Origin: Pavona decussata
Taxonomy: Eukaryota
Reading direction: 5' to 3'
Assembly: GCA_977016875.1 (NCBI GenBank)
Contig: CDRNST010000233.1
Location: 1,178,001-1,242,000, forward strand
Length of the DNA stretch: 64,000 nucleotides
Within the stretch, counting starts at the first letter, position 1. Every line of letters begins with the position of its first letter. A program made the position numbers and the translations under genes. Below are positions 15,301-33,319 of this stretch, in pieces. Under the pieces are notes generated by a model. The model saw only the letters and a list, made by a program, of their open reading frames with translations, was not told the DNA's origin and did no database searches.

Positions 15301-18300
15301 GCAAAAAAAATGTTAACATTTAGTTTTACTTAATACGTTCACAGAAAAACAGTTATTGAACAGTGCATCACGGAAGTTTTAGTAGATTAAAATTAGGAAT
15401 TCATGGTTTATCTTTATGGCGGATGATCTTGATGGCGTGTTTTTGCCTCATGCTAGTCATTAGTTAAGCAACCTTGGTGGGTTATGCCGTTTTTTTCTTA
15501 GATCCGGTTGTTCAAAGGGTGAAAAACTTTATCCAGTGGAAACGTCGCTAGCAAGCGGACAAAATTTACTCCAATTGCCACATTCTGTCCACTGGTAAAA
15601 GCTCTACGCTCTTTGAATAAGTAGGACCAGAAGAGACGACTTAAAAGGCGTCCAAAATAAAAGCTGTCAAAGAAAGAAAATCTTACGGGTAAAAGTATCA
15701 ATTACTGAGTTTAAAACTCGCCCAAAACTAGACAAGATTATGAGAGGATTTTGCTGGTATACCTTAGGGTAAAATTTCGAAATTATGTTAAAGTCAGGTT
15801 TAAAGTTATCACTCGTGAAAGTTCATTTTACTTTGGTGTTAACTGTTGCAAATGACCCTTCGATACTATAAGAAGCTTCAAAATAAATACTATGGTTATA
15901 AGAAAAGCTGTAAGCAAAGAAGTTAACAAAAATAAACAAAACAAAAAAATACATACAGCCATTAGCATCTGTGAAGAATCCAGAAGGAGATCCAGCACAT
16001 GCGCAGTAAGCATTGGCAAAAACAAGTCAGTCAGTTAAAGAATATTATTCTCATTATTATTGGTATTAGAATTTTATCCAAAAAAATACATTCTGTAACA
16101 ATTAAAATTACAAGAAAGGGGGAATAAAGTTGAGTGTACAAAGTAAAGCGACGTACGAGGTGGATATGCAAGGTGCGTTGTTAATAACGCAATGTAGAAC
16201 GCAATGTGATAAATTTGAAAGTCCTGCTTTGTCCCAGGTCGGCAAAGAAAGGGAAAACAGGAGGCGCGGGGCGTGATGGTATTTTTCTCTGCACCATTTC
16301 CAGAAATCCATGCATATTGTTCTGGATTAAGGAGAAACACCTAGGGACAAGGCAGGAGATACACAAAACCTTTCCAAACAAGTAACGACATTTTAGGGTT
16401 ATTATTTCAGCAGAATTCGAGTGCCATTCTTTTCCTTAAGGATATCGCGCAAGGAAAGTGGATCGTGATAAGCGCGCGAAACTAGTCTCGCTGTCTCACT
16501 GGGCGCGCAAAAGACATTACAGAACGTGTTTTTTGTCATCAATGTAAAACTGACCAAACACTATACTCAAACGCGAAAAACTAATTCTGTAATTACAACA
16601 ACATAAAATAAACACAAAATTGCGTGTTCATGAGTCAAGTGATTGAGCCATAACAGGCCTTATTACTCTGGGTTATCAAGAACATCAAGGAGACAAGCTT
16701 ACCGCTTCGTGCGCAGCCTCAATAGCATCCTTGTCGTCTCTCAGTTTCTGATTCATGTCCCTTAAACAAAAATAGTCATTAGCAGGCTGTTTGCAGCCAA
16801 CATAGAATTTTATGGGGAACAACTTTTCAGGCCATATACGTTTAGACGGACTAGTTACAACTCGCTGCACTTCATCCTGGACCTCAGAGAACTTACACGA
16901 GGCAGATGATAAAGGTTCTTAACATTCACTAATTGCTTTTTTTTACCTGAGGATGTCTAGCTGCTTGATGAGGCTCGCTTGTTCCTTTTGCATACCCTGT
17001 GATACCCGCATGGCCGCCCTACAAAGAGAAAGTATCTTCGGTTTAGTGAAAGTTGAAAGCTATAAAGCTACCCTAAGGTATGGACTAATAGCCTTTCTCC
17101 TCCCACGTGATTGCAAGAAAACTGGAGATTAAATTTTATTGTCACGGCTCGCTTCCAGTTTCCATACGACCATTTATACTGTCACCTGTTTCCCGTGTTT
17201 CTCTGTGTAGCAACCACTACAGTTTTTTTATTGCAAGTAATGAAATGGTACCGCCAGATAAACCCTTGTGAATACAGCCGCCTTTTATTTCTCCCTATCC
17301 GGGATGCGATTGGACAAGGGCGATGAGAGACGGGAGGGTATTTGCAAGAAAAGGCAAAACAAACTGGCGAAGACGATGGACGTAAGATATATTTACACCT
17401 ACTATCGTCAATGCTCATTTGATAGAAGAGTTTTTGTAAACAAAAGAGTATGAGAAAATGAGCGCTCTTTTCCAACAAGAAGAAAACCAAAAACGGTTTC
17501 TTTTCACGAATATTTTCGGTGAAAAACCAGGCATTCAATCCAAACAAAAGGTTACTTACAGGACAACAAAAGATAAACTGCGACAGAAAATGATACAAAT
17601 GACAAGCCAAAATAGTGAAAACATAAAACAAATACCCGTTCTGAGGGTCGCTTGAGACGCTTGAACAAGTGTTCTCGTTTTGAAGCTCATCAACAAAATG
17701 TCCACAATGGCATAGCACGGCTTGACAGCCAATCTCAGAAAACGCTACTGGAAGAACAAAGTCTGCTGGTTTAGATGCTAATTCAGCAGAAGTTTGACAG
17801 AGCTCAGTATCATTTAGGCCATCCCGCGAAGTAGATTTAAAGCGGAATACTTCAGGTTCGTCGGGACTTTTCCCGTATGTAGAAGGACGACTAGCGCCCT
17901 GGAGGGGTCCCATTTGTGGAGAGCAGGGCGTATTGACATACTCTTCGACCTCCGCGTCGTTAAAGAGCTCCACGTCATTGGAGACTTGTATCTGTCCAGC
18001 GAGCACGTTCAGGTCGTCTAAAGTATATGCTACTGTCTGGCACTCCTTAGATGTTGCGACATACATATCACCGTCAGGTGATGTCTGGCTTTCTCTACTG
18101 TGATATTCAATGGCGGATTCCAAGTTTGACGTCTGACAGAGTTTTGAAGACGAAACAGTGGTGGCTGTTTGACATGCTTTAGTACCGTAGGTTGGCTTGT
18201 TTCTTTCAAGACTATCTGTGGTCTGGTTGTTGTGTGCAACCGAATCTGCTTTCGCTAATTTCAAGGACAGAGTCGACAAATAATAGTGGTCGTTCATTAG

Positions 18301-21300
18301 GCCAGGATCCGTTTGACATTCTTTGTTGTTGTAGACAAAATACTTACACTGGTGGGCTTGAACCTCAGTTGGTGTCTTAAAGGAACCATCCGCGACAAAC
18401 TTTGGCATTGTCTGGGTTTCTTTAGAGGACACTGCTGGTAACCCAATTTCTGTTTGACACTCTTTGCTCAGGGAGGATATTTCGGTCTCTTTTCCCAGCT
18501 TTGCAATATCTCCAGAGTCGTTATACCACGAAGTCTGACATTGCTTCGATGTAACAAGGAGAAGGTCAGAGTCCAGAATTGTTTGACACTCCTTGCTCTC
18601 ATAGAATATTTCAGTCTCTACTTTTGCCTTCTCAATCTCGTCAGAGGTGTAAGACCAGAAAGAGGTTTGACATGCTTTTGACGTTGCAAACAAAAGATCA
18701 GTGTCCAGGAAGGTTTGGCACTCTTTGCTCTCGTAGGTCTTTTCAGCTTCTTCTGTCAGCTTTGTAATCTCTCCAGAAGTATTGGACCACGAGGAGGGCT
18801 GACATTGAATTGACATTGCAGGAATTAGGTCAAAGTCAAATACTGTTTGACACTCTTTGTTCTCGTGGGAGTTTTCGGCTTCTTCTCTCAGGAATGTAAT
18901 CTCTCCAGAGGTATGGGTCCACGAGGAAGTCGACGGAATAAAGTCAGAGTCAAACAATGTTTGACCCTCTTTGCTTTCGTGGGACATTCCGGCCTCCACT
19001 CCTGTCTTTTTGGTCTCTCCAGAGGCATAAGAAAAGGAAGAGTTCTGATATTCCTTCAACGCCGCAAGAAGAAAATCAGTGTCCAGTAATGTTTGACACT
19101 CTTTGCTTTCGCAGGGTATTTCAGTCTCCACCACAGCCTTTTCGTTCTCTTCAGAATTATGGAACCACGAGAAGGTCTGACATTCTTTTGACGCTACGCG
19201 AAGTAGGTCATTGTCCAGTACCGTTTGACACTCCTTATCAACATAGGAAGTGAACCGGGATGTGGAAATTTTCTTTACAGCAGACTCATCTGCGGCACCA
19301 CGAATGGTCAATATCTCGCACTGCGTTGATGACGTTACAAGTACATTGTGAAGTGATGTTTGGCACTCTTTGTTTGTTAGGGACACCAAGCGAGACGGAC
19401 CATCTTCTGCAGTAGAAGTTCCGCAATCACCGAATTCATGCAGGTTGCTTCCTGTTGTCTGGCATTCCTTGTTGTAAAAGGAAATGTGATTTGCCGATTT
19501 AGTAGTGTTAATCTGGCATTCCTTTGATGATGTCAAAACCAGTTCATAACCAGGTGACGTTTGACAGTCTTTGTCGACATGTTGGCAGTCGTTGATTCGT
19601 GCTTGAACCTCCTCACCACTATCGCCATCTTCGCCTAAAGCAGTCTCCCTCTGCACGATTTTTTCTTCAGAGCGAGGGTTGGGGAGTTTCACCTGGACAC
19701 CCACACTGGCAAAGTCATTGGTTTGCAGCTCTGTCTGGCATTCAATGCTTTGTTGTAGGAATGCTTTTCGGGGAGAACTGACTTCAAGGGTCTCGTTCGT
19801 TTGACATGCAGCATTGACGCTTTTGTATGAAAAGGACGTCTGGCTTCCTTTAGTTTTACACTCTGGTGGGCTGCCACTTCCCTTTAATACATCTACTTGA
19901 CGTTGTTGATCAGTACCCTCCCTGATGACATTACCCGAGTGAAATCTGCCAGCTTTGAATGTGCCAAATCCCTGTTTGCCGTTGTCAGATTCCGCTTTCG
20001 AATAAGAATCAAGTTTCTGCGTTTTGGCTGAGGCCATTGGTCCTTTGTGAGAATTTCCCTCCTCGTCTCGATTTCCGTCCTGGAGCAAATGATGTTGGAG
20101 ACGGTCACTTTTATCAAGATGTGGTTTTCCAAATGGTACCCAGGTTGAGGCCCGCAAATCATCTTGAGTACTGATTTCCACATTTGACCTCTCTTTCTGT
20201 CCTTGAAACGTGAAATAGTTGTTTTTAGAGTAAGTCTGCCTTATTTCACCGGCATTAAGTCCTTCGTAACTGCAGACGACTTCTTCCACCTCCACTTTAC
20301 TTGATCCATTTTTACCATTTGAATCCAATTCCTTGACTTCAACTAAGTTGGCGTCTTTGCTTTGAGTCCCGACTTCAGCAAACATGGGGTCAGTAATGTT
20401 GTCTGCTAAGGCTGTTTTGCCATCTAAACAGTCCGCAGTCTCATCAAGGTAGCTTGAAAACATCGCTTCCGTGGTAGGCAAAGCTCCATCTTCAAACGGA
20501 TTATCGTTGACGTCCAAGGCTACAAAACAGACATCTTCAGTTGCAACATGCCTCTCGGCTGCATCTTGTACTACTCTTAGACTAGTGATATCCGAACCTT
20601 GGTGGTGGCGAAGTGCATTATCCGTCAATGCCAAGGGCTGGAATTGTTCCTCGGGTAGAAGGTCTATTTTTGTCACGTCTTCAAAAGAATCTGCATTTTC
20701 GTTTTCATATGTCTTTTCCGACATATCAAACACTATCTCTACTACTGGAGTCGCTTTGCCAGACAGACTCGTAATTGCACTTGGCTGCTGGATAAAATAT
20801 TGAACTGCTTTTTCGCAAGCAAAGCCTTCTTCGTGAACAGAAGACAATTTGGTTTCACCAACTAAATCCTCAGATTCATCTACGAGGGAAGTGATATTGT
20901 CAGAAACACCACTGTTTCTTTCTACACTTTTTCGCAAACTGGTATGGAGGGTATTGGTCAGTTCTTCTTGAGTGGCATGATCTGTTTTACTGTCTTCATG
21001 AGTAACGTGTTCGGAAATGGGGGAGTCCATTGTAGAATCCTTTGGTTCGTTTTCGTCCAGGAACAAGTCTTCCTTTTTCACGCCTTCATCTGACTGCCAA
21101 AGAGTTGAACTGGTCTCTAGGGTCTCCACTGTAGAAGTCTCATTCTTTTTATGAATGTCCACGTCAAAATTCCCACAGGGTTTAAGGGACGCTGCGGTTT
21201 CTAGGGGTTCAACTGGCAACATCGGAGAGACATAACGTTTACCAGTTATCTCTGGAAAAGAATTGGCACCTCTAGTGTTATGAGTAAGGGCAATGCTTTG

Positions 21301-24300
21301 AGCCACTGGTATTCCTGACAACAATACAGGAGAAACTGTTTCTTCACTCTGGAGTGTGAAATCAGTTGAGCTCGAATCGACATTTGCTTTCTTCTTACCT
21401 CCATTGAGAGGTTGCGCCCTTCTTTGTTCCGTTTCCTTGACGAAGTCTCTCTGATATATTTTTGCTTCATTGGATGGTTCCACATCATCCAAAGATTCTA
21501 ATGCCTTTGCCCAACTTTCTTTAGGTTTGTTTGAGGTCGTCTCTTTCTGTGAATATGGTTCTCTCGTAGGGTTAGGCAGGGCATCAGCTAACTGTAGATG
21601 ATCACCATTTGTAGACGCTTCGCTTGTCTTTGAAAGAACTGCTGCTTGCTTTTTGCGTTCGGGAATACGCCTTTGTCTAGGTACATGGGTGTAACTTCCT
21701 TCCTTTGAAGAAGGTGAATTGGAGAGCTGGGTTACGTTTTTTCTGAAGCGTCGCATATCTGTCTCACTTAGATGGGTTCCAGTGCTTTTGTCGTTCATAT
21801 TATGAGGGCCATCATAGTTCTCATCCGTTGGCTGAAAGTGGGCATCAAGTGCACTTTTTGTCTTTCGCATGGTCCTTCCTACTTCGTCATCTTGGCAACT
21901 CTGATTAAGTTGCTCATGTGTAGTAATGGTGTCAGCTTTCTCCTTTGAGATTACTTCCTGACTGCCACCTTTCTCTTGTTTTTCCTTGAAAACAGGAACT
22001 AAAGAAAAGTAGTTGTCGCTGTCGATGTCACCACTGTTACAGTTGCCGTCGTCCTTGTCCTTGTCATTAAAACGAAGAATTTTCTCGATACTTGGATGTT
22101 TGCTGTCGTCGTCCAAGGAGAGCTGTAGTTCTCGTTCTGCTTTCTTGGTGGAATGCCTCTTAGACTCGTTCCCCTCAACTGCCATCTTACTTTTCTGTAA
22201 TAAGCGTTTTGTAGTCTTTGCCAAACTTTCGTCAGCTGCACCGGAAGACCGTCTCCTTGCATGTGGTTCAGTAGCCGTGCTAGGACGAGGCAAATCACCA
22301 GTTAACTTAGAGTGTAGTTCATTGTGTTTCGGTGATGTTTCAAAAGGACTTTTGCTTTTCATCGTGGGATTCTTTCCCTGTCTTTCGTTCTCGTTGTATT
22401 TTCGTTTGGTCACAGGATTGTACGTTCGTTGCTGTGTAGAACGTGAAGTGGGACGCTGAGAAACGTCTTTCCCGGGACGTCCATTGTCTTTCTCAAGTAG
22501 CTGGCTATCAATAATTCCGTCCTTTGCTTCTGTGTCAGTGCACTCCCCTTTTACTTCATCTTTCACCAAACAAGTATCCTCTCTCACCCGTTTCGCTTTG
22601 AGTCCACGTTTGTCAGTTGTCTGATAACCTTGCCGCTGCTTGTAAGAAACAAACGCCTCTCCGCCTGTAGGTTCCAAAGTTAAAGAGCCATCAACCGTGT
22701 TTTTCATTTTACCTCTGTCGGGAAGGTGTTCAACAGGCCCACGATTCAAATCTTTATGTGGTCGATTCTTCTCTCTCGCCGGCCACCTTGGGTCCGTTGC
22801 TTGAGATATTTTTTCTGCATCTCCCATTTTCAGTTCTGATCCATAAGCGGCGGGAGCCATCGTATCTTTGACTTCCTGCTTCTCATTGTCTTGCAGATTC
22901 TCCTCCAGCCTTTCACCCTCGGAAGGCGATTTACGGCTCGTGTTTGAAGTTACTTCTCTCTTGATTGAACGTATCTTTATAGGAACAACCTTTCCCTGAA
23001 CATTTCCATGCCCAGTAGGTCTTGTCATTGAATCCTCTGGTATCAGTTTCTGCCATGCAGGATAAGAAATATTCTTTACTTCCTCTGACCCATAAAACGG
23101 ACTTTGATCGCTTGGTATCTGTTTAGACAATTGGCCAGACTGCAAGGTTCCCTTTGACCGCCTAATCAGATTACTGCAGGGAATACCATCCAGTTCATCT
23201 TGGCTAGACCGTTGATAGTCAAATGTTGTGTCTCCTGGGGCATTCGGCATTACGTTGACACTTTCATACTCAGTGGACAAATTAATACTGCTGTTCAGTT
23301 CATAATCGAACTCTGCACCGTGTGAATTGCCACGCTTTGAAGGTAAATCGTCACATTTGGCAGCAGGCTTGTTTGTCACTCTCATCTCCGCTTTGGTAGC
23401 TTCAAGGTCATTATAATATTTACTCGGCGTATGATTTCCAGGATAGCCAGCTGAAACTCCTTTGTCCGCTTCGACCCCTGTCGCACCTTGGAGCATCACT
23501 CCCTCTGTGTCCCACTTTCCTTCAGGTTTGCTTCTTTGCTCATCCCTCACCAAAGAAATAGAAGGGGCAGCCGTCAGGGCAAATACAGAATGGCGATCAC
23601 TTCTTCCACCACTATGGTGAAACTGTGACCCTTTCAAAGCATCGTGGTCGGTAGAATCACCATCGGTCCTTCCAACGTAGGGCAAGGCACCTTCGCGCTG
23701 ATATAATGACCTTGATTTTGATTTTATTACCCTGTGCGAATCTTCATTGCGAAACACTCTTATTGCTGGTCCTCCAGAAATCCCAGGCACCACACAAGCC
23801 ATAAGCCCACGATCGCTATCTTGGCCTTCAAACTCAGGTCTCTTCAAAGAATCCCCGTCATTATGTCTGTGTTTCTTATGTCGCTCTGCACGGCCTTCCT
23901 TTGAAGCCATCTTTCGTTTCGTTCTCTTGTCATCTTGTTTGCCAACAAGTGCAAAACACATAAAGCCGCTATCAGCGCTGCTTGTTGATAAATAGTCATC
24001 TTCGATCACATCTGGAACGTAGCCTAACTCCGAAGCTACAGAAGACAAATCTTCGAAACTATCAGCAATCTGGCGTGACGTGCCCTGCGGGTATCCAGAG
24101 ATGACCTCTTGATCACCGTCACGACGCCTGGAGGTCGGACTAATACTTTCATTCCACCGACAATCCTTGCCAGCGAAAAACCGTGCGGTATATCCAAAAT
24201 GCTCCAAAGACCCCTCTGTTTCATTGCGGTATCTGAAACTGCCTTCCGAATCAGCCTCGCTCGAAAATGAGGCCATTGGAAGGCGATCTAATGTCTGTCG

Positions 24301-27011
24301 TTTGTTCGACACGCCGGGTATTTTTTGTAAACACTGATCAATTTTTTTCTCCCTACTGTGCGAACGCTCATCATCTCCTTCGCTCCAAAAGACGGAATCG
24401 TCCTCAAAACAATCATTCCGGATTCCATCAGGACTGTAACGTTGCTCCGAGCTACTGGTATTTTGTGGATCGTCCCTCAAATTGGGAGATGTCGAAGTGC
24501 ACGTCGCAGTTCCAATGTCGTGAAAGGACGTCTCACTTTCACTGCTGAGAATATTTGCGTACTCCAAAAACAATTCAGAAACTTGTCGCCCCATACTCGG
24601 GCTTGGAGGCCAGTTTTCTTCTGTGTAAGCGTCGACGGAAATGATGTCTTTGTTTAACTCGGGGCACGAACTCGAAGCCAAAGATACCGCTCCGTCTTTT
24701 GACAAATCGTCGTTCGAAGCGGACGTGTCCGACGAGGGGTACACATTGACAACGTTGACAAAACGCCGAAACTGGGGATCCAATCGAGAAACATACGACG
24801 TTGGGGACTTGGACATTTGGATTTCTTGAATCTGTTGGGCCCAATGCAAAGGTCACAAGGCAGTTAATCAAACTGTGAATTCCATCTATTCTGTTTTCGC
24901 ATGGCGTGTGTACGGCTGCGTGAGGGATTTACAACGTTTACAATTCCACGCCAATCATCTATCAACCGGTTTTATGGTCTCGTGTTAAGTACGCACAAAC
25001 AGCATACACTGTGCAAACATCGTCAGACAGTTTGATAGGCAGAAGTGTTCATTATTCCAGCAGCAGACAAATACTTAAAATTTTTGAATAAATCTGACGA
25101 CGTTTACTAGCTGAACGGAATTTGCAGAAATTTCTCGACAAACTTACACGAAACGTTTCCGAAAAATTGTTATTTCAATAACGCATTGAAGGCTAACAGT
25201 TTGTCAAATTTTACCGTCGCAAGTTATGTCGAGCTCAGCAATGATCTTATGTTTTTTGTCAGTCTGCAGCCTTCAAGACGCCCACAAATGGTTCAAATGA
25301 CGTGGGGGCCGACAAGATTATTTTTCAAAACAATACACCAATTATACGTGAAACATAATTCGCTCAGAAAGCTAATTTCGGCTCCACTCGAACATAAACA
25401 AGACAAAACAATTATTAACTCCTCAGGTAGTTTTTCTTGTTATGAAACTCAAATAGCAAAAACACTCCATCTTTGCTGCTTATACAAGTCCCATTAGCTT
25501 TGAGTTGCGAAATAATGTTTAATTGCAAAGATTAAATTCTGTTTGTAAATCTTTTTCGTTCATTCGGAAGCAATTGGTTGTCCTAGTAATTCAGTTCAAT
25601 GACCTTTTTCACAGCGAATTTTCGCGAAACGATTTCCTGAATAATCCATCAAATTTTTCATTATAAAAATCACGAGAATTCGCTTCAAATAAAAAGAAAG
25701 CACATTAGTTGTAGTCGCAAATGGAAAGAGTTTAAGTTGGACAGACATAAAAATCGAATTATAAAACGCGACATGTCAAATGCCTTATCCCTGATTAGTG
25801 AACGATAATGAAGCTGGAACCTTATACCCTTGAGCAGTGCATACTTTTATAGTCTAATAACTTTGCACGAGACAGTTTCTAAATTTAGTTCAAGCTTTGT
25901 GTATCTTTACGTGCAAAATTAAGCAATGCAGTGTAGACGTCAAGGAAAAGGAAAACACTCCACAACCACATCTGTTCAACACTATAACGCGCAAACAAAC
26001 CTATTTCCCCTACTTCGCTTGGCAAGTAGCAATTATTCACCATAGTTTTTCATGTCAAAGTCTCGATAAGAAACATTCAGTGATAAAAATTTGCATTTTT
26101 AATATGCAAACTCACGCCGTGTTGACACAGAAAAACACACATAAGAGTAGTAAATGGCAAGACAGTTGTGTTTTGTCATCTCATGATGTGGGGTTAGAAA
26201 TTGATGTCAACTCAAACTCATTCTTTTAGTCCTTTGAAGGTTGCATGTCTCAGGATATGGGAATGAGCGATACCAGAAGGCGGAAAAAGCTTGTATTTGG
26301 ATTATTATTGTACGCACGACGGGAAGGTCCCATTCACACCAAAACATTTTCAAAAGTTTGGATTTCCATTGAAAAACAAGTAAACGTTCTGCTTCCACAT
26401 GACCATTTTTAGACCGTTTTTTCCGCCCACACAAGGACGGCACGAACATGAAACCTATACAAGCGATAAACCGCACTTCTGTATACGTAATATCAGTCGA
26501 CAAGTCGTTCTTTTCGCTGTCCACACAGTCTGCATTGTTACGCTGTCCAGGCGGATGCGTTTTGGGAAGACTACACGCTGAAAAACGGCCGTTTTATTGA
26601 AGTTGGTGTTTTCAATGCGCATTCGTATGGACGGAAATGGAAACGCAAAGAAAAGTTTCCGGTTTCAAACGCATCCGTGTGGACGGGGCCTCTGAAGTCT
26701 TCAAAGAACAAATCACATGACTGCAGTCAGTTTGCTCCATACCAGGCTAAGGATAAGGTAAGGGAGATTCTGACTGGTGCCGTATGGCGATATTCCACTC
26801 CATTCACTTCGCGTCAAATGGGGGATCGGGATAAAGATTGCCTGCGGTACGGGACGAAATAAACTTATATAATCACACCAACGACCAACTGAGAAAGCTG
26901 CTCTCCTCGCCAACCCTCTCCACTCCACTGACACACAAATTCACACGCTTCCCGCTTATAATAATAATTCTACTACTAGTAATACTACTACTACTACTAC
27001 TAAAAATAATA

Positions 27012-27049
<38 letters not shown>

Positions 27050-30000
27050 AATCTTACTAAAGATTTTTATACGCATTTTAAGATGAAAATTAGCGATAAG
27101 AAAATCCGAAGTTTCAGAGACTCCATGTCGTTACTATCAATGAATATGCAAGGTAAGCTCATACAATGACGACATGGGAGTAGGATTTTGAAACGAAACG
27201 TAACATTTTGCTTTGGTTCTCGTGCCACTTTCGCAACCAATAAGAATAAAACTTGAAAGCAACCGTGAATATTTCGCACGCGTTTTCCCGCGCCTGGCGC
27301 CCCTCTTACATATCAAATTCTAATTGGTTCATTGCGCTGTTTAGGTCTGTTTTGATTAACCAGAGTAATTACTTTGGTTTTGGTTCCACGACACTCAACA
27401 ACATGCAAGCGAGCAACATCTTCGCATTTCCTTTCGGTGGAGCGCCAAAGTAAAAGAGATTGCGGTGGTCTAAACCTACCGTGCCCTCTCTTTCTTTTCC
27501 ATCGCCGTTTGAGCTTGAAGTTGGTTCACGTAACTTTTCGTGTCTTCTAAGGAGCTGACGGAAGAACTCAACATCTCTTCCAGGTACACCGTTTTCTGAG
27601 TGGATCATAAAATTAAAACTGTGTCAGTAGCGTTGCCATTGTAAGTAGCTCAACTCTACAACGAACAGATAAAGTCGTCCCTCTTCCTATGGAAAGTTAC
27701 AGGAGCATGCACCTTTTAACGAAGAATTTTTAGTAAAATTCGGCGAGAATGGTTATTTGGGAGAACTGCTGTCACCTTTTTAAGATTCTTGTGCTAGAAA
27801 ATATTCCGGAAGGGAGGCTTTGGAAGGGATTCTTATTGTCGAGCCCTTTTTTCGATTCGCGCTGGCTGCTTTAGCAAATTTCCTACGTGGCCTTTTGACC
27901 CCTGCTCCCAATCCCAGAAAGAAAAGTTGAAACAGTGCTTTTCCATGTTACCATATAATAGTCCGAGGCAACATTTGCTAAGGGGAGCACTGTAATTGGC
28001 TCTTGTTGTAGTGGCTCCCCTGCCTGAATGTCTTCTGTGTAGCTATTTCAAGGGGAGCTCAAAAAATAAATAAATAAATAAATAAATAAACAGCTGGCAC
28101 TACTTTGGTCTACTTTTTTTTGCCGTTAGGGAACTTTGCGACACTTACCGACTACAAGCATAACATTGTTCCCACATACTAAAATAATTTTTAAAAATAC
28201 AATTCTGTATTTTAATAGAAAACTATCCCGTGATAAAGACCCATTTAGTGTACGAGAAGAGTTTAAATCAGTACCCAAAGCGCAAAAATTCCTGGCGTAG
28301 TCCCTTTAAAAGTGTTCACATGTTTGTACTGCACGCTGTGAGCGAAGCACGTACGATGCCTTTTGACATCTCCTAGAAATCCATAAATCTCAAGTCATCT
28401 TTTGCCGCTCTTGTACTAACCTGATAAAGTTTTTCGTTTTCACTCTTTATGTCTTGTTCCGTGTAATTTTTCTTTTGAATTTCTTCTTCCAGCTAAAAAC
28501 AAACAAATCAACAAACAGAATAACTAGTGACATTATAACTGCTCTGCATTTTTCCATTTTATATGGTCGCATTTAAAGTTTCAGCTTTGCTGTAGTTAGT
28601 TTAAAAGCCGCTTTGTTCTGCGGGGGTCATGCGGGGGCAAATACATGACTTTATTTAGTGGGCCACAGCGTTACTAAGCCTCAGCGAGCCCAGTTTAGCT
28701 GGCTATTTTATGCCGGGCAATAGAAAACAAAGTTGTTCTACAGCTCTATAACAACTATTGTAATATTATGTAATTCACTGACCGACTTCTGCTTTTGTAA
28801 AAGATGTTGCATCTCTAGTTCCTTGCTTTCCAGTTCTCGGATCAGCTCATCTTTCAAAGCTTTTTCTCGTTTTATTTGCTGAAAACAACACACAAGCACT
28901 CTGTTAGTTAACGCTTTCATTTCCAAGACAAACTAAACTCAGAAATTATTCAAGAAAAATCTCAAATTCAATTCTCTAATATTTAAACACTGACAAACAG
29001 ATGGCACCATAGGGAAGCACATATCCCAGTGGGGTTAGCACTCAGTGATAGGTCAAGCCTGAGAATTTTCTCCAAAAAAGATCTCTAGTCTGTAATGAGG
29101 TATATAGACCTAGACACACAATGTGTATGCATTTATACCAACCCTCCTGGAATATCCAGGAGTTCCCCAGTTACAGAACAAATTTCCTCGTCTCCTGTAT
29201 GACTCCGGTACCAAATCTTCCAGATGAAAGCCATTTTTAATGCTTTCTCTATAATCAACTAAAACTTCAACATCAAATTTTCTTACAATTATCCTCCAAA
29301 TTTTGGTTTTCCTTTTATTTAGGTTACATTTCTTGGGCACACCTTTTACCCAATCTGTTACAACGCTAATACGAAAACCCTTGGAAATGGGGTACTAGAT
29401 TTTAAGGGGAGGGGATGGGATGGGTTGGCTGGCCATTTTGGAGGGCTGGTGCGTACAAGGAGAGGTGGCCGGGTTGGTGATGGGGACTGGCCCTAAAGAA
29501 AAAAAAAACAGAATTCAGACCACCACAGGTTATCTCTTATCTACAGGAATCTCTGACTATGGAAAGCCAGGCCTGATATGTGGGCAGGGAAATGTCCCTC
29601 CCCCACCCCCAAGAAATTAAGGGACTTGCAGTATTACAACCTCCCTGATGGGATGCCAGCTCTTTGCAGCATTATCCCACAGAATATGAAAAGCCTGGAC
29701 TCTGAAGCCCAGAGAGTGATCAGGATCAAATTTCTCCTCACAATATCACATGATCCAACTCAGTCAGTGCATGAGACAAATGGAAAAGATCAACTAGGTA
29801 AAAGTTTTACGCAAAGTTTCATGCAATAATGATGGGATTAAATACTGAGATCCTGCATTGTCTTCAATTCATACAGCAACACATTGTGATCAAGTTAAAA
29901 ATACATTGAAATTTTGAGTTGTCATATTTTCAAACCACAATGACCAACACCTTTCATGACAAGAAATTTCACTTCATTAATTCTTTCTCTTCAACCAAAG

Positions 30001-33000
30001 GTCATGATTACTTTATGAGCATTATTAAATCAGGGATGCTGAACCCATTTATGCAGTCAAATAAGTGAAACATTAGATAAGTGCCAGAGGGCTATTTGGT
30101 TCAAAAACTATTTAATTAATATTTAATTAACCTTTATAAGTGTCACACCTCATTACATTAAATTATTATAATTTTTAACCTTTTATAATTGTCATACCTC
30201 ATTATGAATTCTCTCTTTCTCAGTTCTAATTTGTTGCTCCATCTCCTCATATAACCTTTGGACTTCTTTGTCATGAGAGTTTGATTTACTGCGATAAAAC
30301 AAACAAGAAATATGAAAGACTTATAAATGCTGAGAAGAGTTTAGGACACAAATGTGGAATTCTAGGAGCATAATTAATTAAGTAATTAGTTTTAACTTCA
30401 GCACAATTTTGATCCAAAAACATACAAATGACAATATAATAACCCTCTAACAGGCTGTATGTATAACTGGAATTAGCCTGGGTACAACTGCCCACACACA
30501 TCAAGCAAATCGGAATTAAGTTGAGGAAAGCAGGCTACTGCATACAGGATACCTAGCCAGGATAAATCAGCATTTACTATTCTTGAGAAATAATAATTGT
30601 TAAAGAAACCTCTTACTGAATTAATTATCTGATGAATCTTGCCAACATACAAATTCATGATATAACTTGTATTTTGATGTTCTGTGCCTCAAAAATTATC
30701 ACTGATTACAAGGAACTGTGATTCTAACTCCATGAAATATTGTATCTATTTGGATGAATTAGGCTTTTGCTCAAATTCTAACATCTAAAACTTAACACAT
30801 GTTTAATTTAAATGTTTCATTGATTTCAAACCTCAAAATACCTCCTCTTTCTCCCCACTCACATTCTAAATTTGAATAATTTCAAGATATTATAATAAAA
30901 CTGTTATAAACCACTTTTCAATATTTTTCTGTTTCCAAAATGTATGCCATGACAAAAGAAATGCATAAGTTGACCCTATTTTGAGAACAAATGGACAATC
31001 TCCCATTACATAGACAAAACTATAATATTGCTTTTCACAAAACAACTTAAAATTTAAATATTTTGGCTGTAAAAGAAGAAGCTTGCTCAAACAATAAACA
31101 GAACTAATAGTTTGTCTTCTATAAATAATTATAATTCATTAGTAGATAAGCAGGCTATTAGTAAAAGTGACCAAACTGAACCAGGATACTTGATCATTAA
31201 GAAGGAAAAGGAGAGGCTTATAATGTTATATAAAATGTATAATGATCTGGTAGACTTGGCTCTAAAAGCTACCTCCTGCCAGCAGGGCACCAAAGCCACC
31301 AGCACTCTGAAAGTACCTGCAATTTATTTTCCTTTTTCCGTAAGACAACAAGGGAAGGGAACACCTTACCACTGGATGTAATTGAGTCGGATTCTGTTTC
31401 TCCTTTCAAAGTTAAACTGGAAAAATTGACCTTAATTTACTTATTATTCTTAACTTATTGTAATGACTGCTGACCACATGTGAAAATCTTCTGTACAGAA
31501 GAAGACATGTATATGGAAAGAAAAAGAAAGAAAGAATGTGAAGTATTTTACATACCTTTTCAGGGCACTCTCGAGTTGCTCGGATTCTACTTTAGCTCGT
31601 CGAATCTCGCCCGAAACTTTGCCTAAAAACTCCTCGAATTTCTGCAATCCGCGCACGTCGTTTTTCCGAAGGGCTTCCCATAAGTCGCGCAGCTGGTCTT
31701 TGGTCAGAGATCTAGCACAGGAGAATTACCGGTAATAATCTTAAGTGCAATCGCTTAAAAGGATTAAAGATCTTGTTGATAAGATTAATACCCCAGCAAA
31801 TTGCCCCGTTTAAAAAGTCTTGAATTAAAATCACCAAGGGGCGATTTTTTTTCCTGCCAGGTGTGAAGGATTGTTGTTTGTCTACACCTCGCTGCCTGAT
31901 CGCTGTCAGCACATTTACATCGCGAATATGAAATGCGCTAATTAAATATAAAGGAAAATAATAATTCGACAGAGCTTGCCAGAAATACTTTGTCGTTGCG
32001 TTTAGACGTTCAAAGGGTTTAACGGAAAAAGATTATTGCCTTTTTTTCTTCAAACAATATGACAAAAGTCCAGCTACTTTGTTTGGTCTGATGTGCAGTC
32101 GAATAATAAATGTTTACAATACGGACTTGAATAATTATAACCAAGATTTTTCCGCTTTTTTGTTAACGATGATTTTATAAGTACGCTAAATACCTTTGAG
32201 TGCAATAAAAGCAAAGAATAATGTATTACAGATCCCATCCCTAAAAAAAGTAGTGTAATATGATATCGAACGTCCGATCGTCTGTTCGAAAATGGATTCA
32301 AAATCTCGCTGAATTTTTTGCGGGAAAATACAGATGTAAACAAACATTCACTTCCTAACCCCGGGGGATTTGGTAGAAAGCGACAGCAGCACTTAACCAG
32401 TTTCATAACAGCTGAAGAGAATTTCCACAACCAAGAACGTCAGAAAACGCGGTTAAAAGATATAAGTGCCCGTAATCATAACAATAATAACCCTCAGCTG
32501 TTATTGTAAGCCAGCCAAGGCGCCAAATTTGATATGCCTAAGTACAAACATGACACCATATTAAAATCAAAGCAGGATCGGTGTGGGCTTAAAAAGCACA
32601 ATCCACAAAACCGATAGCGGATCAAATTGTTACCCCGTGAAAATGTCTTCTCCGACGCTTTCCACAATTTCCCGAAACAGCGCATCTTCCGAAGGGTGAT
32701 TTGGTGATGCTAGGCCAGTCTCCAAACTTTCGAAGATATCCAGCTCCGCGTGTCCATTGTCCTTCGTGAATCCATCGCTCAAATCATGTTTCGACGAGTC
32801 AAATTCTGTCGAGCCGTTACCTTCGTCCAGAAACGTCCCAAATCCTTCGACAAATTCATCCATAGTTAATTGACCGTTTTTATCGATGTCTAGCTTATCG
32901 AAGATAAAATCAAGTTGCTCAAAATTCAAGTTTAAGTCTTCGGCGACCCGCTCCAAATCTGCCTTGGTGATGTATCCCTTCCCTTCAGGGTCGCACAAGA

Positions 33001-33319
33001 AAAACAGCTCTCGACCAGGGTCGCTGATTGACGTGATTTCCTCCAGTTCGCTTTGGCTTTCATCGTCCGAGCGTATGCCCAGGAAAAGCCCAAAACCTGC
33101 TGTGAACTCCTCTAAAGTCAAGTAGCCATTCTGATCTTCATCGAGTTCATTGAAAGTCTGCTTAACTTGCGCTGCATCCAGAGGCAGGCCAAGTTCCGCG
33201 ATCACACTCTGTAATTCATTCTTGGTAATATAACCTTTGCCGTCGTGGTCACATAAGTTGTAGAGCTCTATCGCTCGCTCCTTTAAAACCGTTTTCAGCT
33301 GATCTGGGTCTTCGGCCAT
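5304..33319 (-). CDS. CRACR2A: Large Rab GTPase gene, CRACR2A/EFCAB4B (Rab46)-like or RASEF (Rab45)-like: 4 EF-hands, coiled coil, acidic linker, Rab domain, C-terminal CC; ~893 aa
   Basis: GT-AG, phase-consistent exons: 33319-32634, 31711-31556, 30288-30198, 28878-28783, 28492-28421, 27595-27480, 17018-16947, 16760-16703, (15968-15957), 14792-14745, 12933-12788, 11694-11599, 10758-10613, 9926-9813, 9334-9183, 8438-8279, 7802-7721, 7240-7126, 6487-6377, 6232-6156, 5391-5304. Family motifs: [92 protein letters not shown]2A versus RASEF orthology is not resolved without a tree. Confidence 0.88.
6156..6232 (-). CDS. CRACR2A: Rab domain exon: G5
   Basis: [25 protein letters not shown]; GTAAGT donor. 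Confidence 0.9.
6268..6333. repeat. (AATC)n(AGTC)n compound microsatellite
   Basis: Direct reading. Confidence 0.9.
6377..6487 (-). CDS. CRACR2A: Rab domain exon: G4 (SKVD)
   Basis: [37 protein letters not shown]. Confidence 0.9.
6625..6830 (+). mobile_element. tRNA-derived SINE
   Basis: A-box-like GCAGTGGTGAG, B-box GGTTCGATTCC, then a non-tRNA body (TGTGGGCTGAGTTTGT...TTTTCTCCGGGTACTCC). Confidence 0.7.
7126..7240 (-). CDS. CRACR2A: Rab domain exon: switch II / RabF
   Basis: [38 protein letters not shown]. Confidence 0.92.
7721..7802 (-). CDS. CRACR2A: Rab domain exon: G3
   Basis: [28 protein letters not shown]. Confidence 0.92.
8279..8438 (-). CDS. CRACR2A: Rab domain exon: P-loop and switch I
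   Basis: [25 protein letters not shown]...FTATI; tandem CAGCAG acceptor. Confidence 0.92.
9183..9334 (-). CDS. CRACR2A: Large Rab gene pre-Rab linker exon
   Basis: [12 protein letters not shown]...[21 protein letters not shown], resembling the SSPRGQPVGK motif of CRACR2A; GTAAGT donor. Confidence 0.85.
9813..9926 (-). CDS. CRACR2A: Large Rab gene acidic linker exon
   Basis: [21 protein letters not shown]...GAAA; GTGAGT donor; phase 1-1. Confidence 0.8.
10613..10758 (-). CDS. CRACR2A: Large Rab gene linker exon
   Basis: [18 protein letters not shown]...CVQPT; phase 2 to 1. Confidence 0.8.
10907..11025. repeat. Imperfect inverted repeat (~54-bp arms), MITE-like
   Basis: GGAGCAGATAGTTGGGTCGGAAGGAAGTCAAAACGGGTAAGTTTACAAGAACGA versus reverse complement GGGGCAGATAGTTTGGTCAGGAAAAAGTCAAAATGTCTAAGTTTATGAGAACGA. 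Confidence 0.7.
11599..11694 (-). CDS. CRACR2A: Large Rab gene linker exon (symmetric, 96 nt)
   Basis: [31 protein letters not shown]; GTAAGT donor; phase 2-2. Confidence 0.75.
12788..12933 (-). CDS. CRACR2A: Large Rab gene linker exon
   Basis: [48 protein letters not shown]; phase 0 to 2. Confidence 0.8.
13040..13560 (+). repeat. Degenerate ~105-110 bp satellite-like tandem repeat (~5 units)
   Basis: GAGTCTGTGGATGAAATCCT...AAGTGTGA...GCAGTA.TTTCCTGTGGT..TGTTTATTA..CTGTACAAGGTGGTTCTAAC recurs at ~13040, 13153, 13261, 13366, 13457. Confidence 0.8.
14640..14704. repeat. Perfect palindrome, 32-bp arms around a single C
   Basis: TTTTTAGGTAATAAATCGGTTTAGAGCATTTA-C-TAAATGCTCTAAACCGATTTATTACCTAAAAA. 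Confidence 0.92.
14745..14792 (-). CDS. CRACR2A: Large Rab gene 48-nt linker exon
   Basis: [16 protein letters not shown]; CAG acceptor, GTAAGA donor; phase 0-0. Confidence 0.75.
15957..15968 (-). CDS. Candidate 12-nt microexon (MLMA) of the large Rab gene
   Basis: TTCTTCACAG|ATGCTAATGGCT|GTATGT; frame-preserving in a phase-0 intron. Confidence 0.5.
16703..16760 (-). CDS. CRACR2A: Large Rab gene exon 8
   Basis: [19 protein letters not shown]; GTAAGC donor. Confidence 0.88.
16947..17018 (-). CDS. CRACR2A: Large Rab gene exon 7
   Basis: [23 protein letters not shown](R); strong TTCTCTTTGTAG acceptor; phase 2-2. Confidence 0.88.
17636..24831 (-). CDS. Giant (~7.2 kb) alternative coding exon in intron 6 of the large Rab gene: ~2400-aa disordered region with KECQT motif array
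   Basis: Part of uninterrupted ORF 17182..24849 (2555 codons). Phase-2 donor GG|GTATTT at 17636 matches the phase-2 acceptor of exon 7. 5' end is either a CAG acceptor (exon start 24831, phase 0) or the first ATG at 24816. No transposase or RT motifs. Confidence 0.75.
18400..19260 (-). repeat. Coding tandem repeat, ~132 bp / 44 aa, ~7 units
   Basis: GTTTG(A/G)C anchors at 19223, 19091, 18959, 18845, 18713, 18581, 18452 (spacings 132, 132, 114, 132, 132, 129). Confidence 0.85.
26960..27050. repeat. (TAA)/(CTA)/(ATG)n trinucleotide microsatellite
   Basis: Direct reading; the source of the spurious poly-M/poly-I ORFs. Confidence 0.9.
27480..27595 (-). CDS. CRACR2A: Large Rab gene exon 6 (coiled coil)
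   Basis: [38 protein letters not shown](R); phase 0 to 2; joins exon 7 as a continuous helix. Different frame from the ORF-track call 27369..27608. Confidence 0.82.
28421..28492 (-). CDS. CRACR2A: Large Rab gene exon 5 (coiled coil)
   Basis: [24 protein letters not shown]; phase 0-0; GTTAGT donor. Confidence 0.85.
28783..28878 (-). CDS. CRACR2A: Large Rab gene exon 4 (coiled coil)
   Basis: [32 protein letters not shown]; TTTCAG acceptor, GTCAGT donor. Confidence 0.85.
30198..30288 (-). CDS. CRACR2A: Large Rab gene exon 3 (coiled coil)
   Basis: [30 protein letters not shown]; CAG acceptor, GTATGA donor. Confidence 0.88.
31556..31711 (-). CDS. CRACR2A: Large Rab gene exon 2
   Basis: TAG acceptor; [18 protein letters not shown]...LESALK; donor GTATGT; phases match neighbours. 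Confidence 0.85.
32634..33319 (-). CDS. CRACR2A: Large Rab gene exon 1: two EF-hand pairs
   Basis: ATG at 33319. Loops [48 protein letters not shown]. Phase-2 donor GG|GTAACA. Confidence 0.9.

Follow-up and report, generated by a model that had tools for sequence, protein, structure and literature searches.

A conserved 7.2-kb exon in intron 6 of a coral large Rab GTPase gene probably opens its own transcript

Intron 6 of a large, CRACR2A/EFCAB4B-like Rab gene, on the minus strand of the window (the whole 64,000-nucleotide stretch of Pavona decussata DNA analysed here), contains a 7.2-kb open frame that is, judged from comparative sequence, a real and conserved exon. Most likely it starts its own transcript, whose protein would carry about 2,400 residues, predicted to be disordered, in place of the calcium sensor and the greater part of the coiled coil. 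We consider it quite probable that the locus is orthologous to the large calcium-sensing Rab GTPases (the CRACR2A/EFCAB4B, Rab46 / RASEF group) and encodes at least two proteins, and, as part of the same reading, that the long isoform comes from a second promoter in intron 6, has the giant exon as its first coding exon and is spliced to the Rab exons.

The host gene and its giant exon

The host gene begins with the EF-hand exon (33319) and ends with a stop at about 5304 on the minus strand, and its exons were mapped by tblastn with transcript-derived coral proteins of 826-846 aa. Exon 1 (32633..33319, with its ATG at 33319 and its true end a few codons further on, near 32630) carries two EF-hand pairs, recovered as an EF-hand_7 match in Pfam (E 1.3e-26) that falls into two stretches, and belongs to the short isoform only. 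Exons 2-8 align with coral, Nematostella and other EFCAB4B proteins bearing PF27574, which is annotated on the orthologous products of Orbicella, of coral genome L004 and of Nematostella; exon 2 alone (50 aa) gave no match when searched against Pfam. RefSeq names the cnidarian orthologues EFCAB4B. Protein mapping placed exon 5, which ends in phase 0, at 28421..28492, and exon 6, a coiled-coil exon of 116 nt running from phase 0 to phase 2, at 27480..27595; the latter is used by the short isoform and would be skipped by the giant one. Exon 7 (16946..17018), which was mapped in the same way and carries a coiled-coil remnant, is the first exon common to both. The Rab GTPase domain is encoded within 5304..8447, where tblastn located exons at about 8447-8277, 7806-7720, 7242-7126, 6487-6375, about 6230-6155 and 5393-5304, and where an exon-by-exon search returned Pfam Ras matches on three separate exons. 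The Ras domain of the window is 80-100% identical to the Ras domains of coral RefSeq proteins, and the gene closes with a C-terminal double-cysteine motif predicted to be prenylated (...KKKCCK-stop at about 5304).

An upstream promoter would give the canonical short protein of ~840 aa, with EF-hands, coiled coil, linker and Rab, and this isoform is attested by spliced transcripts of other corals. The same transcripts contain the exon 6|7 junction (...KKERAR|AAMRVSQG), bearing out the original prediction that these two exons already join. Its phase arithmetic was also right, as either exon 6 or the giant exon alone keeps the frame while both together shift it.

All the elements that had been claimed for a giant exon in intron 6, namely the open frame, a CAG, an ATG and a donor, were found. 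In the window ORF analysis the stop-to-stop frame covers 24852..17185 of the minus strand, or 2556 codons, and by our own estimate, which assumes that ~5% of random codons are stops, chance would produce so long an open frame with a probability near 1e-57. The genome carries one copy of it. As the coding exon of the long isoform it would run, in one piece, over 17636..24816 on the minus strand, with 2393 codons, 2 further nt and a phase-2 end; counted from 24831 it measures 7196 nt, which is 2 mod 3, the same as exon 6. The GT donor of the giant exon (phase 2, 17634..17635), which reads ...AACGG|GTATTT after 17636, would join exon 7 at 17018, a junction that is also present in gene models. Homologues of the giant region comprise 25 proteins with E down to 0, and residues 1-2281 of the Orbicella X1 product map to one unbroken block of genomic DNA, that is, to a single exon. 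The giant frame is unbroken in all six other coral genomes compared, free of the frameshifts and stops that had been named as fatal to the exon, and the order of EF-hand exon, giant ORF and Ras exons is kept in these six genomes. The dN/dS comparison suggested alongside gave 0.56-0.77 across coral relatives, as for a fast-evolving and probably disordered sequence; despite these values, we count the intact frame as support.

Transcript models for the giant isoform

Homologous gene models and conservation show the start codon and the splice pattern predicted for the giant isoform. The Met at 24814..24816 (minus strand), which opens a conserved N-terminus of the form MS.SPT(S), is residue 1 of every full-length homologue found (about 30 scleractinian proteins), and the RefSeq and GenBank models of Acropora, Montipora, Orbicella and Stylophora begin at this same Met. 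The predicted models of these four genera also join ...G|AAMRVSEG, which corresponds to a 17636>17018 splice in the window. The RefSeq models measure 2635-2667 aa in Montipora foliosa/capricornis, 2577-2633 aa in Acropora muricata/palmata and 2737-2769 aa in Orbicella faveolata, while the Stylophora GenBank model PFX17651 measures 2739 aa; all of them contain the giant region and a C-terminal Ras domain, and no EF-hand. In Orbicella, the EF-hand-less product of 2769 aa is the longest of its gene, and the annotation gives the EF-hand unit a gene of its own, with a product of 415 aa. The comparative evidence as a whole (the conserved Met, the models in four genera, the separate Orbicella gene and the non-coding character of the upstream sequence) agrees with an internal start at ATG 24816, one of the two models first put forward. 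The product expected from that model was likewise upheld: it would be without the EF-hands and coiled-coil exons 1-6, would keep the Rab domain and the CC prenylation site, and would measure about 2,830-2,885 aa by exon arithmetic only. Transcription would thus start a second time inside intron 6, most likely within about 150 nt upstream of the ATG, with the 7.2-kb exon as first coding exon; translation would begin at the conserved Met, and the splice from 17636 to 17018 would lead into exon 7, the linker exons, the Rab domain and the CCK prenylation site.

The DNA ahead of the ATG has a promoter-like character, and we infer a promoter there. A conserved non-coding block found by alignment (24817..25137, minus strand), a candidate promoter with a short 5′ UTR, forms a stretch of ~320 nt that is the only long alignable one in the 2.65-kb upstream part of intron 6 when the window is compared with Orbicella. 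Within this block are two CCAAT boxes in inverted orientation (ATTGG, at 24951-24955 and 24841-24845), which are retained in four of five lineages and are both degenerate in a Montipora-like genome (L006). About 1.3 kb upstream of the ATG lies a palindromic octamer-like pair, TTTGCAT...ATGCAAA (26089..26110, minus strand), a candidate enhancer whose 18-nt core is invariant across four distant coral genomes. This element contains no ORF and no conserved splice site, on which grounds we ruled it out as an exon.

A variant of the internal start, which we regard as improbable, would leave the giant exon as the first coding one yet place another exon ahead of it. That leader, either a non-coding exon farther upstream within the intron or the host gene's own 5′ exons read in a non-productive frame, would splice to the CAG at 24832..24834 (minus strand), the acceptor proposed earlier, and the conserved block would be a splice-acceptor region plus 5′ UTR and not a core promoter. 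Indeed, the AG stands 15 nt before the ATG in six of seven genomes with a conserved T-rich stretch ahead of it, and a second conserved element does occur 1.3 kb upstream. However, that element is without a conserved GT donor or exon-like features, the aligned AG is missing in Orbicella, and conservation over ~320 nt far exceeds the need of an acceptor. Use of the CAG is unsupported, and it may be idle or serve a 5′-UTR intron.

The other model first put forward, a mutually exclusive internal cassette in which exon 5 would be spliced to the CAG at 24832 in place of exon 6, giving a protein of ~3,200-3,250 aa with EF-hands, fared worse, and we consider it very unlikely. The frames of the window do fit it, since the phase-0 end of exon 5 can be followed by either alternative, each being 2 mod 3 in length; the AG is at the same place in the six genomes mentioned, and the five codons after it are open in the window and in genomes L001, L002, L004 and L005, so that occasional splicing from exon 5 to the giant exon would be frame-compatible in the window and its close relatives. 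Yet no protein linking EF-hands to the giant region was present among the 25 matches in the fitting length range or the listed cluster members, all homologues start at the Met, and the EF-hand-less form is the longest Orbicella product. The pyrimidine tract before the CAG is modest (11 of 20), and the 15 nt between CAG and ATG evolve as non-coding sequence: in L006 an in-frame TGA, in the very frame that the cassette requires, immediately precedes the ATG (-3), while in Orbicella an 11-nt (non-triplet) deletion within the 15 nt downstream of the CAG removes the site. An independent nested gene, the outcome named at the outset as contrary to the giant isoform, whose stand-alone protein would stop at 17182 in the intron and never be joined to the Rab exons, is scarcely credible, for although the window frame stays open for 150 codons beyond the donor and prokaryote-style gene callers give the stand-alone form, the read-through tails vary by species in length and sequence, cross-species DNA conservation ends 11-19 nt beyond the donor, both the phase-2 donor and the junction with exon 7 are conserved, and the relatives' models splice the giant exon to exon 7, the junction being used by all eukaryotic models that reach it, including partial ones of Acropora digitifera and A. 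millepora.

The CQT motif array and candidate LC8 binding

The giant region encoded by this first coding exon is rich in Ser/Glu/Thr/Asp/Lys and has no Pfam domain and no PDB relative. Its N-terminal roughly 430 residues (23527..24816, minus strand) are the best-conserved part, with short conserved blocks, a mean column identity of 59% in the alignment and dN/dS of about 0.37-0.58. AlphaFold2, run with an alignment on the N-terminal 450 residues, gave a mean pLDDT of 38 with a weak hairpin at 338-356 only. Disorder was thus modelled for these 450 residues, and for the motif array it was judged by composition and absent domains.

The array fills the last third of the giant exon (17782..19854, minus strand; residues 1655-2345) and consists of 19 motifs of the form [D/S/T/N][K/R]x[C/T/S]QT, candidate LC8/DYNLL sites, where shuffled sequences hold 0.08; CQT triplets in the exon also number 19, against 0.2 expected. 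The motifs mostly read SKECQT or NKECQT, neighbours are 12-82 residues apart, and the array includes a 132-nt (44-aa) tandem repeat. Every coral homologue checked has CQT copies, from 9 to 26 of them. Motif anchor residues are 66-91% identical across species versus 26-68% for non-motif residues, figures that may partly reflect alignment anchoring and recent tandem duplication.

An LC8 motif comprises eight residues, with Gln at position 0 flanked (-1 and +1) by small or beta-branched residues and, in most cases, preceded by K/R at -3 and an H-bonding residue at -4 (PMC6607443). The motifs of the array meet every defining position except -1, where Cys is non-canonical; a CQT anchor of Caenorhabditis elegans SAO-1 has been crystallised in the LC8 groove and validated by mutation (PMC9630320; PMC12797016). 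A canonical 89-aa LC8 gene is present in the genome. One copy in the array, SKETQT, is of the canonical KxTQT type and matches what we take to be the dynein intermediate-chain site. The CQT array fits the LC8 consensus, which suggests that LC8 binds it. Beyond the scleractinians, the giant exon is absent from Nematostella, and the octocoral orthologue has an alternative, TQT-bearing N-terminus that likewise meets the shared exons at the boundary of exon 7 and contains 8 [T/S/V]QT against 0.89 expected and 4 TQT[D/E] against 0.06 expected. We see this N-terminus as analogous to the scleractinian giant region and count it as support for the LC8 reading.

That the new N-terminus functions as an LC8 tether is put forward tentatively, from the motifs themselves. 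LC8 dimers would bind them in register on two chains, and such zipping would yield a stiffened duplex directly before the short coiled-coil remnant, standing in for the lost coiled-coil dimerisation. The membrane-anchored Rab would then carry a long LC8-decorated tether or spacer and would not act as a Ca2+-gated dynein-dynactin activator. It is also conceivable, and we hold this with similar reserve, that the KECQT array is not for LC8 and forms a cysteine-dependent repeat (for metal or redox sensing, or S-acylation) or the site of another partner, the giant region acting as a plain long disordered spacer or scaffold on the Rab. Across scleractinians, nearly all motif copies have Cys at -1 where Thr is usual, a fixation that hints at a Cys-specific role, and Cys at this position is rare among known LC8 sites; the strongest repeats have a second conserved element after the motif (hydrophobic-L-D-x-D-hydrophobic-L), and a Cys cluster, GCQA.LC.CG, closes the giant exon in every species compared. 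On the other hand, all LC8 positions besides -1 are satisfied, CQT is a proven LC8 anchor in SAO-1, one copy is a canonical KETQT, and in the octocoral counterpart the triplet is TQT.

Comparison with known systems

The host gene resembles CRACR2A-L (Rab46) in having two EF-hand pairs, an EFCAB4A-type helical region, a coiled coil, a linker, a Rab domain and a CC-type C-terminus. Ca2+-regulated dynein-dynactin adaptor activity is known for human CRACR2A and Rab45 (PMC6504896), and in mammalian CRACR2A it is mediated by the EF-hands and the coiled coil; by analogy, the coral short isoform may be a dynein adaptor as well. A counterpart of the Rab-less CRACR2A-S can also be recognised, as read-through of the exon-6 donor stops at once and the 415-aa Orbicella product is annotated as such a form. 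A review of the large Rabs (PMC8303950) describes no mammalian isoform that has, as predicted for the corals, a giant disordered N-terminus. In the mouse, the EF-hand domain is missing from both Rab44-S and Rab45-S, and Rab44-S is also without half of its coiled coil (PMC8303950). The coral giant isoform, from the same family, would be similar to Rab44-S and Rab45/RASEF-S in that it loses the EF-hands and keeps linker, Rab and prenylation site, and similar to Rab44-S in that the N-terminal part of the coiled coil is lost and the distal part kept. However, the mouse forms are merely shorter, whereas the coral form would gain about 2,390 residues from one exon, making an isoform more than three times longer.

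Arrays of short LC8-type motifs in a disordered chain, as the coral exon is predicted to encode, are found in multivalent LC8 clients such as Drosophila ASCIZ, with seven motifs (PMC10046861), and the KANK1 L2 linker (bioRxiv 10.1101/2025.07.16.665182). Two chains of a known client are held together in register by LC8 dimers, which makes them stiffer. Human ASCIZ has about 11 LC8 sites, and Nup159 is another multivalent client. To our knowledge, the 19 candidate sites of the window, with up to about 26 in other corals, exceed those of any described LC8 client. Unlike known clients, the coral array has a CQT anchor instead of TQT, its client would be a prenylated Rab and its sites are candidates. 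SAO-1 shares the same C-Q-T triplet, mutation of which weakens SAO-1 binding, but it is unrelated to the coral protein, and a 24-residue peptide contains both of its sites, VAT and CQT (PMC9630320).

A last likeness is to the giant ankyrins, where, in some of the transcripts, one huge exon lengthens a membrane-associated scaffold by a long, mostly disordered stretch. The two have no sequence relationship, and, whereas the giant-ankyrin exon is an internal cassette, the coral exon most likely opens the coding sequence and brings a start of its own.

A large Rab gene and the open frame in its sixth intron

Few cargo adaptors link calcium directly to dynein, and large Rab GTPases belong to them. 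The minus strand of the window carries a gene of this family, whose cnidarian orthologues go in RefSeq by the name 'EF-hand calcium-binding domain-containing protein 4B', a synonym of CRACR2A. Its exons were mapped with transcript-derived coral proteins of 826-846 aa (database proteins P0061 and P0063-P0067), which can derive solely from spliced mRNA since their single ORF spans about 28 kb of genomic DNA. On this strand, exon 1 (ATG at 33319) codes for two EF-hand pairs (Pfam EF-hand_7, E 1.3e-26) and exons 2-8 for the helical and coiled-coil part; several small linker exons come next, and the Rab domain exons lie between about 8447 and 5304, with a C-terminus ending in ...KKKCCK-stop. Two of the linker exons, at about 14739-14786 and about 11600-11700, match cassette exons that separate RefSeq isoforms X1-X7 in other corals. 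Intron 8 contains a conserved intronic element of about 150 nt (15916-16068, minus strand) which has 80-83% identity to Orbicella and to the comparison loci L005 and L006, and no open frame. A short element repeated several times in intron 9 (13082-13551, and again at 4027-4103), with multiple matching sites in the Orbicella and L005 loci, probably belongs to a dispersed or tandem repeat family.

Intron 6 (27479 to 17019, minus strand) holds one open frame of 2556 codons (24852-17185), which by our estimate would arise by chance with a probability near 1e-57. The ATG (24816), the CAG (24834-24832) and the GT following 17636 are all found where the original prediction had placed them, and its frame arithmetic is correct: phase is 0 at the end of exon 5, the lengths of exon 6 (116 nt) and of the giant exon (7196 nt, counting from 24831) both equal 2 mod 3, and the base missing after either one comes from exon 7. 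The existence of the giant exon, which is present once in the 602-Mb genome, is confirmed by its open frame, start codon and splice signals and by coral homologues. Isoform sizes were obtained from sums of exon lengths and from homologues, the searches having used single exons or database proteins; the predicted product would be about 2,830-2,885 aa with an internal start at this ATG, or about 3,200-3,250 aa if exon 5 were spliced to the giant exon. The Logan contig L001, one of the comparison coral loci, does not count as transcript evidence, its sequence being colinear with genomic DNA, introns included.

At the exon 6 donor, read-through (27477-27482, minus strand) gives CGG TAG and stops at once, so that a transcript retaining intron 6 or polyadenylated within it would encode an EF-hand and coiled-coil protein of about 400 aa without the Rab domain, resembling mammalian CRACR2A-S. 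In the Orbicella RefSeq annotation, a Rab-less 415-aa product is recorded as a gene of its own (L003 1-7348).

Coral homologues and the composition of the giant exon

Among 5.8 billion protein clusters, 25 relatives of the giant region were found, and all the named ones are corals. The RefSeq models measure 2635-2667 aa in Montipora foliosa and M. capricornis, 2577-2633 aa in Acropora muricata and A. palmata, and 2737-2769 aa in Orbicella faveolata; A. digitifera and A. millepora are represented by partial models, and Stylophora pistillata by a 2739-aa protein (GenBank PFX17651). In these models the giant region is followed by a linker and then by a Ras domain, an EF-hand is absent from all of them, and all open with the same Met and the same N-terminal motif. 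Run exhaustively with residues 1-427, phmmer gave 12 clusters whose full-length members all start at that Met, the single apparent N-terminal offset being an internal duplication in the model concerned.

In every model the giant part ends in ...G and continues with AAMRVSEGMQKEQ, which is the 17636>17018 junction of the window. Gene callers that ignore introns run on into the intron, where the read-through tails are unlike in each species, and DNA conservation with distant corals ends 11-19 nt past the donor. Because the junction is common to all models, the tails are variable and conservation ends near the donor, we infer that the ORF forms an exon spliced to those of the Rab; the outcome that the original prediction had named as its refutation, an independent nested gene, is highly improbable on the same grounds.

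EF-hand-less isoforms of large Rabs are known, if poorly understood, and the giant isoform is already in public databases as uncharacterised predictions ('uncharacterized protein' in RefSeq); a description of it was not found in the open-access full-text literature on coral large Rabs and LC8/CQT. The coral version is extreme in that the alternative N-terminus is a single 7.2-kb exon, open in both major scleractinian clades.

Ser, Glu, Thr, Asp and Lys abound in the product of the giant exon, which matched no family in a Pfam search; a PDB sequence search with the repeat region gave chance hits only (E at or above 0.38) and no solved relative. Its best-conserved part, residues 1-450, is predicted to be disordered (mean pLDDT 38, AlphaFold2 with a 14-sequence alignment). 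The dN/dS comparison proposed with the original prediction gave 0.77 with the congener L002 (93-95% DNA identity), 0.69 with L001 (91%) and 0.56 with the more distant L004; values were about 0.4-0.66 in the first 300 and last 900 codons, and for the two closest relatives they came near 1 in mid-exon. The frameshifts or stops that were to be looked for in relatives did not appear, the frame being open over 2,100-2,540 codons in all of them. Selection evidently acts on length, frame and short motifs. Just before the donor (17650-17720, minus strand) lies a cysteine cluster, GCQA.LC.CG, which is kept in all coral homologues and is distinct from the KECQT repeats.

A probable internal start of the giant isoform

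The original prediction left two models, a cassette mutually exclusive with exon 6 and an alternative first exon, which we compared in seven genomes (the window and six loci, including the Montipora-like L006 and Orbicella L003). The 15 nt from the CAG to the ATG translate as IQEIQ, IQGNQ or FQEYQ in the clade of the window; in L006 they read ILEI-stop, with a TGA right before the ATG, and in Orbicella the stretch falls inside an 11-nt deletion. This segment evolves like a 5′ UTR, unlike coding sequence. The 2769-aa protein of Orbicella is the longest product of its gene, the upstream EF-hand unit being annotated separately, and no database protein was found that unites EF-hands with the giant region. 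The window and Orbicella can be aligned over about 320 nt just before the ATG (24817-25137), whereas almost nothing aligns in the rest of the 2.65-kb upstream part of the intron. This block contains two inverted CCAAT boxes, at -25 and -135, kept in four of the five lineages. A second island 1.3 kb upstream of the ATG (26089-26110, minus strand) is a palindromic octamer-like pair, TTTGCAT-ATTAAAA-ATGCAAA, whose 18-nt core is invariant in four distant coral genomes; it lacks exon features and looks like a POU/Oct-type enhancer or transcription-factor site cluster.

The UTR-like stretch, the split of the Orbicella gene, the lack of a protein with both EF-hands and giant region and the conserved upstream block together favour a putative internal promoter with a short leader. 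Mouse offers family precedents for such an EF-hand-less product: the EF-hand domain is missing from both Rab44-S and Rab45-S, and Rab44-S is also without half of the coiled coil (PMC8303950).

Six of the seven genomes keep the AG at 24832, and the RefSeq models were seen as CDS ranges only, so that we leave some room for splicing onto the giant exon. It is unlikely that a spliced non-coding leader feeds it; the block at about 26100 is not that leader exon, since it has neither an ORF nor a conserved donor. Genuine splicing from exon 5 shares the conserved AG and is frame-compatible within the window's clade, but the TGA in L006, the Orbicella deletion and the missing EF-hand and giant combination make it very improbable. 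Of the original prediction, then, the alternative first coding exon stands, with its conserved Met and UTR-like upstream sequence, while the mutually exclusive cassette is unsupported. For annotation, the locus merits two overlapping transcription units and not a single gene with a 10-kb empty intron.

A CQT array as a candidate LC8-binding region

Residues 1655-2345 of the giant exon (17782-19854) contain 19 matches to [DSTN][KR]x[CTS]QT, where 0.08 are expected in shuffles, and 19 CQT triplets against 0.2 expected. The array is partly a 44-residue tandem repeat. Every coral homologue examined has 9-26 CQT triplets in its C-terminal third, mostly as SKECQT or NKECQT, and when five relatives are aligned the K, C, Q and T positions show 66-91% identity, against 26-68% for the rest of the region, a difference to which alignment anchoring may contribute. 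In the strongest 44-residue repeats (18450-19240, minus strand) a second conserved element, hydrophobic-L-D-x-D-hydrophobic-L, comes right after CQT; its sequence resembles acidic-dileucine sorting signals, or may simply mirror recent tandem duplication.

By the published rules, LC8 clients have Gln at position 0 flanked on either side (-1 and +1) by small, buried residues, a basic side chain at -3 and a hydrogen-bonding one at -4 (PMC6607443), and the window motifs agree with all of these save at -1, where Cys stands in place of Thr. The same CQT triplet is the anchor of C. elegans SAO-1, where a crystal structure places it in the groove of LC8 and mutation bears this out (PMC9630320; also PMC12797016). 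The canonical SKETQT occurs once in the window. The same genome carries two tandem, apparently intronless LC8/DYNLL genes (G000:C318:1535109-1536995, L007 and L008) with full-length Pfam Dynein_light matches, the L007 ORF being a canonical 89-aa LC8, and partial LC8 matches occur on contigs C1132 and C176. A complex prediction for two LC8 chains of this genome with two copies of a 35-residue KECQT segment scored 0.33 against a mark of 0.34, and one control scored as high. From the motif rules, the SAO-1 precedent, the SKETQT copy and the presence of an LC8 gene, we tentatively suggest that the array may bind LC8.

If so, LC8 dimers would bridge two chains in register beside the short coiled coil left in exons 7-8, replacing the lost dimerisation domain and stiffening the arm, much as bridging and stiffening have been described for ASCIZ (PMC10046861) and KANK1 (bioRxiv 10.1101/2025.07.16.665182). 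A more speculative possibility is that promoter choice switches one anthozoan gene between a Ca2+-gated dynein-activating Rab and a prenylated, roughly 2,800-aa Rab; the disordered arm of the latter would carry more LC8-binding sites than any array seen so far (about 19-26 K-x-C-Q-T) and be zipped by LC8 dimers into a long rigid membrane rod, where the buried invariant Cys at -1 might add sensitivity to redox state or modification. What makes the gene interesting is how large the exon is, together with the conserved CQT array of a Rab that has its other isoform in a dynein-adaptor family. Were the array to bind LC8, it would offer a natural test case of very high valency for LC8 making rods from disorder, and one gene could swap a coiled-coil and EF-hand motor-adaptor module for an LC8-zippered one while the Rab membrane anchor is kept.

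Beyond the stony corals, the equivalent intron of Nematostella is 178 nt long and contains no giant exon, the longest of seven annotated isoforms being 882 aa. The octocoral Dendronephthya gigantea has a 21-kb intron at the same position of the same gene, in which (L011 16851-31053) about 12 kb of acidic, disordered-type, Pfam-free open frames are spread over more than one reading frame. Part of this is annotated as a gene of its own, with a 981-aa product that has no Pfam hits, and a much larger isoform may use these frames as additional exons. A 1028-aa RefSeq isoform of this species has a 577-residue alternative N-terminus which joins the exon 7 homologue at the same boundary and contains eight [T/S/V]QT (0.89 expected) and four TQT[D/E] (0.06 expected). 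Comparison of the scleractinian giant exon with the octocoral intron 6 ORFs gave nothing below E = 1, and a 15-residue octocoral match to the N-terminus of the giant exon was dismissed as chance, its frame being full of stops. Since sequence similarity is not detectable, we regard the octocoral arrangement as analogous to the scleractinian one; the likeness could go back to a shared ancestor, the anemone having lost the exon, or could have arisen by convergence. The microsynteny of the Rab gene appears old: a KIF21-type kinesin gene adjoins it in the octocoral (L011 1-5476), and a UQ_con gene is next after it in both Orbicella and Nematostella.
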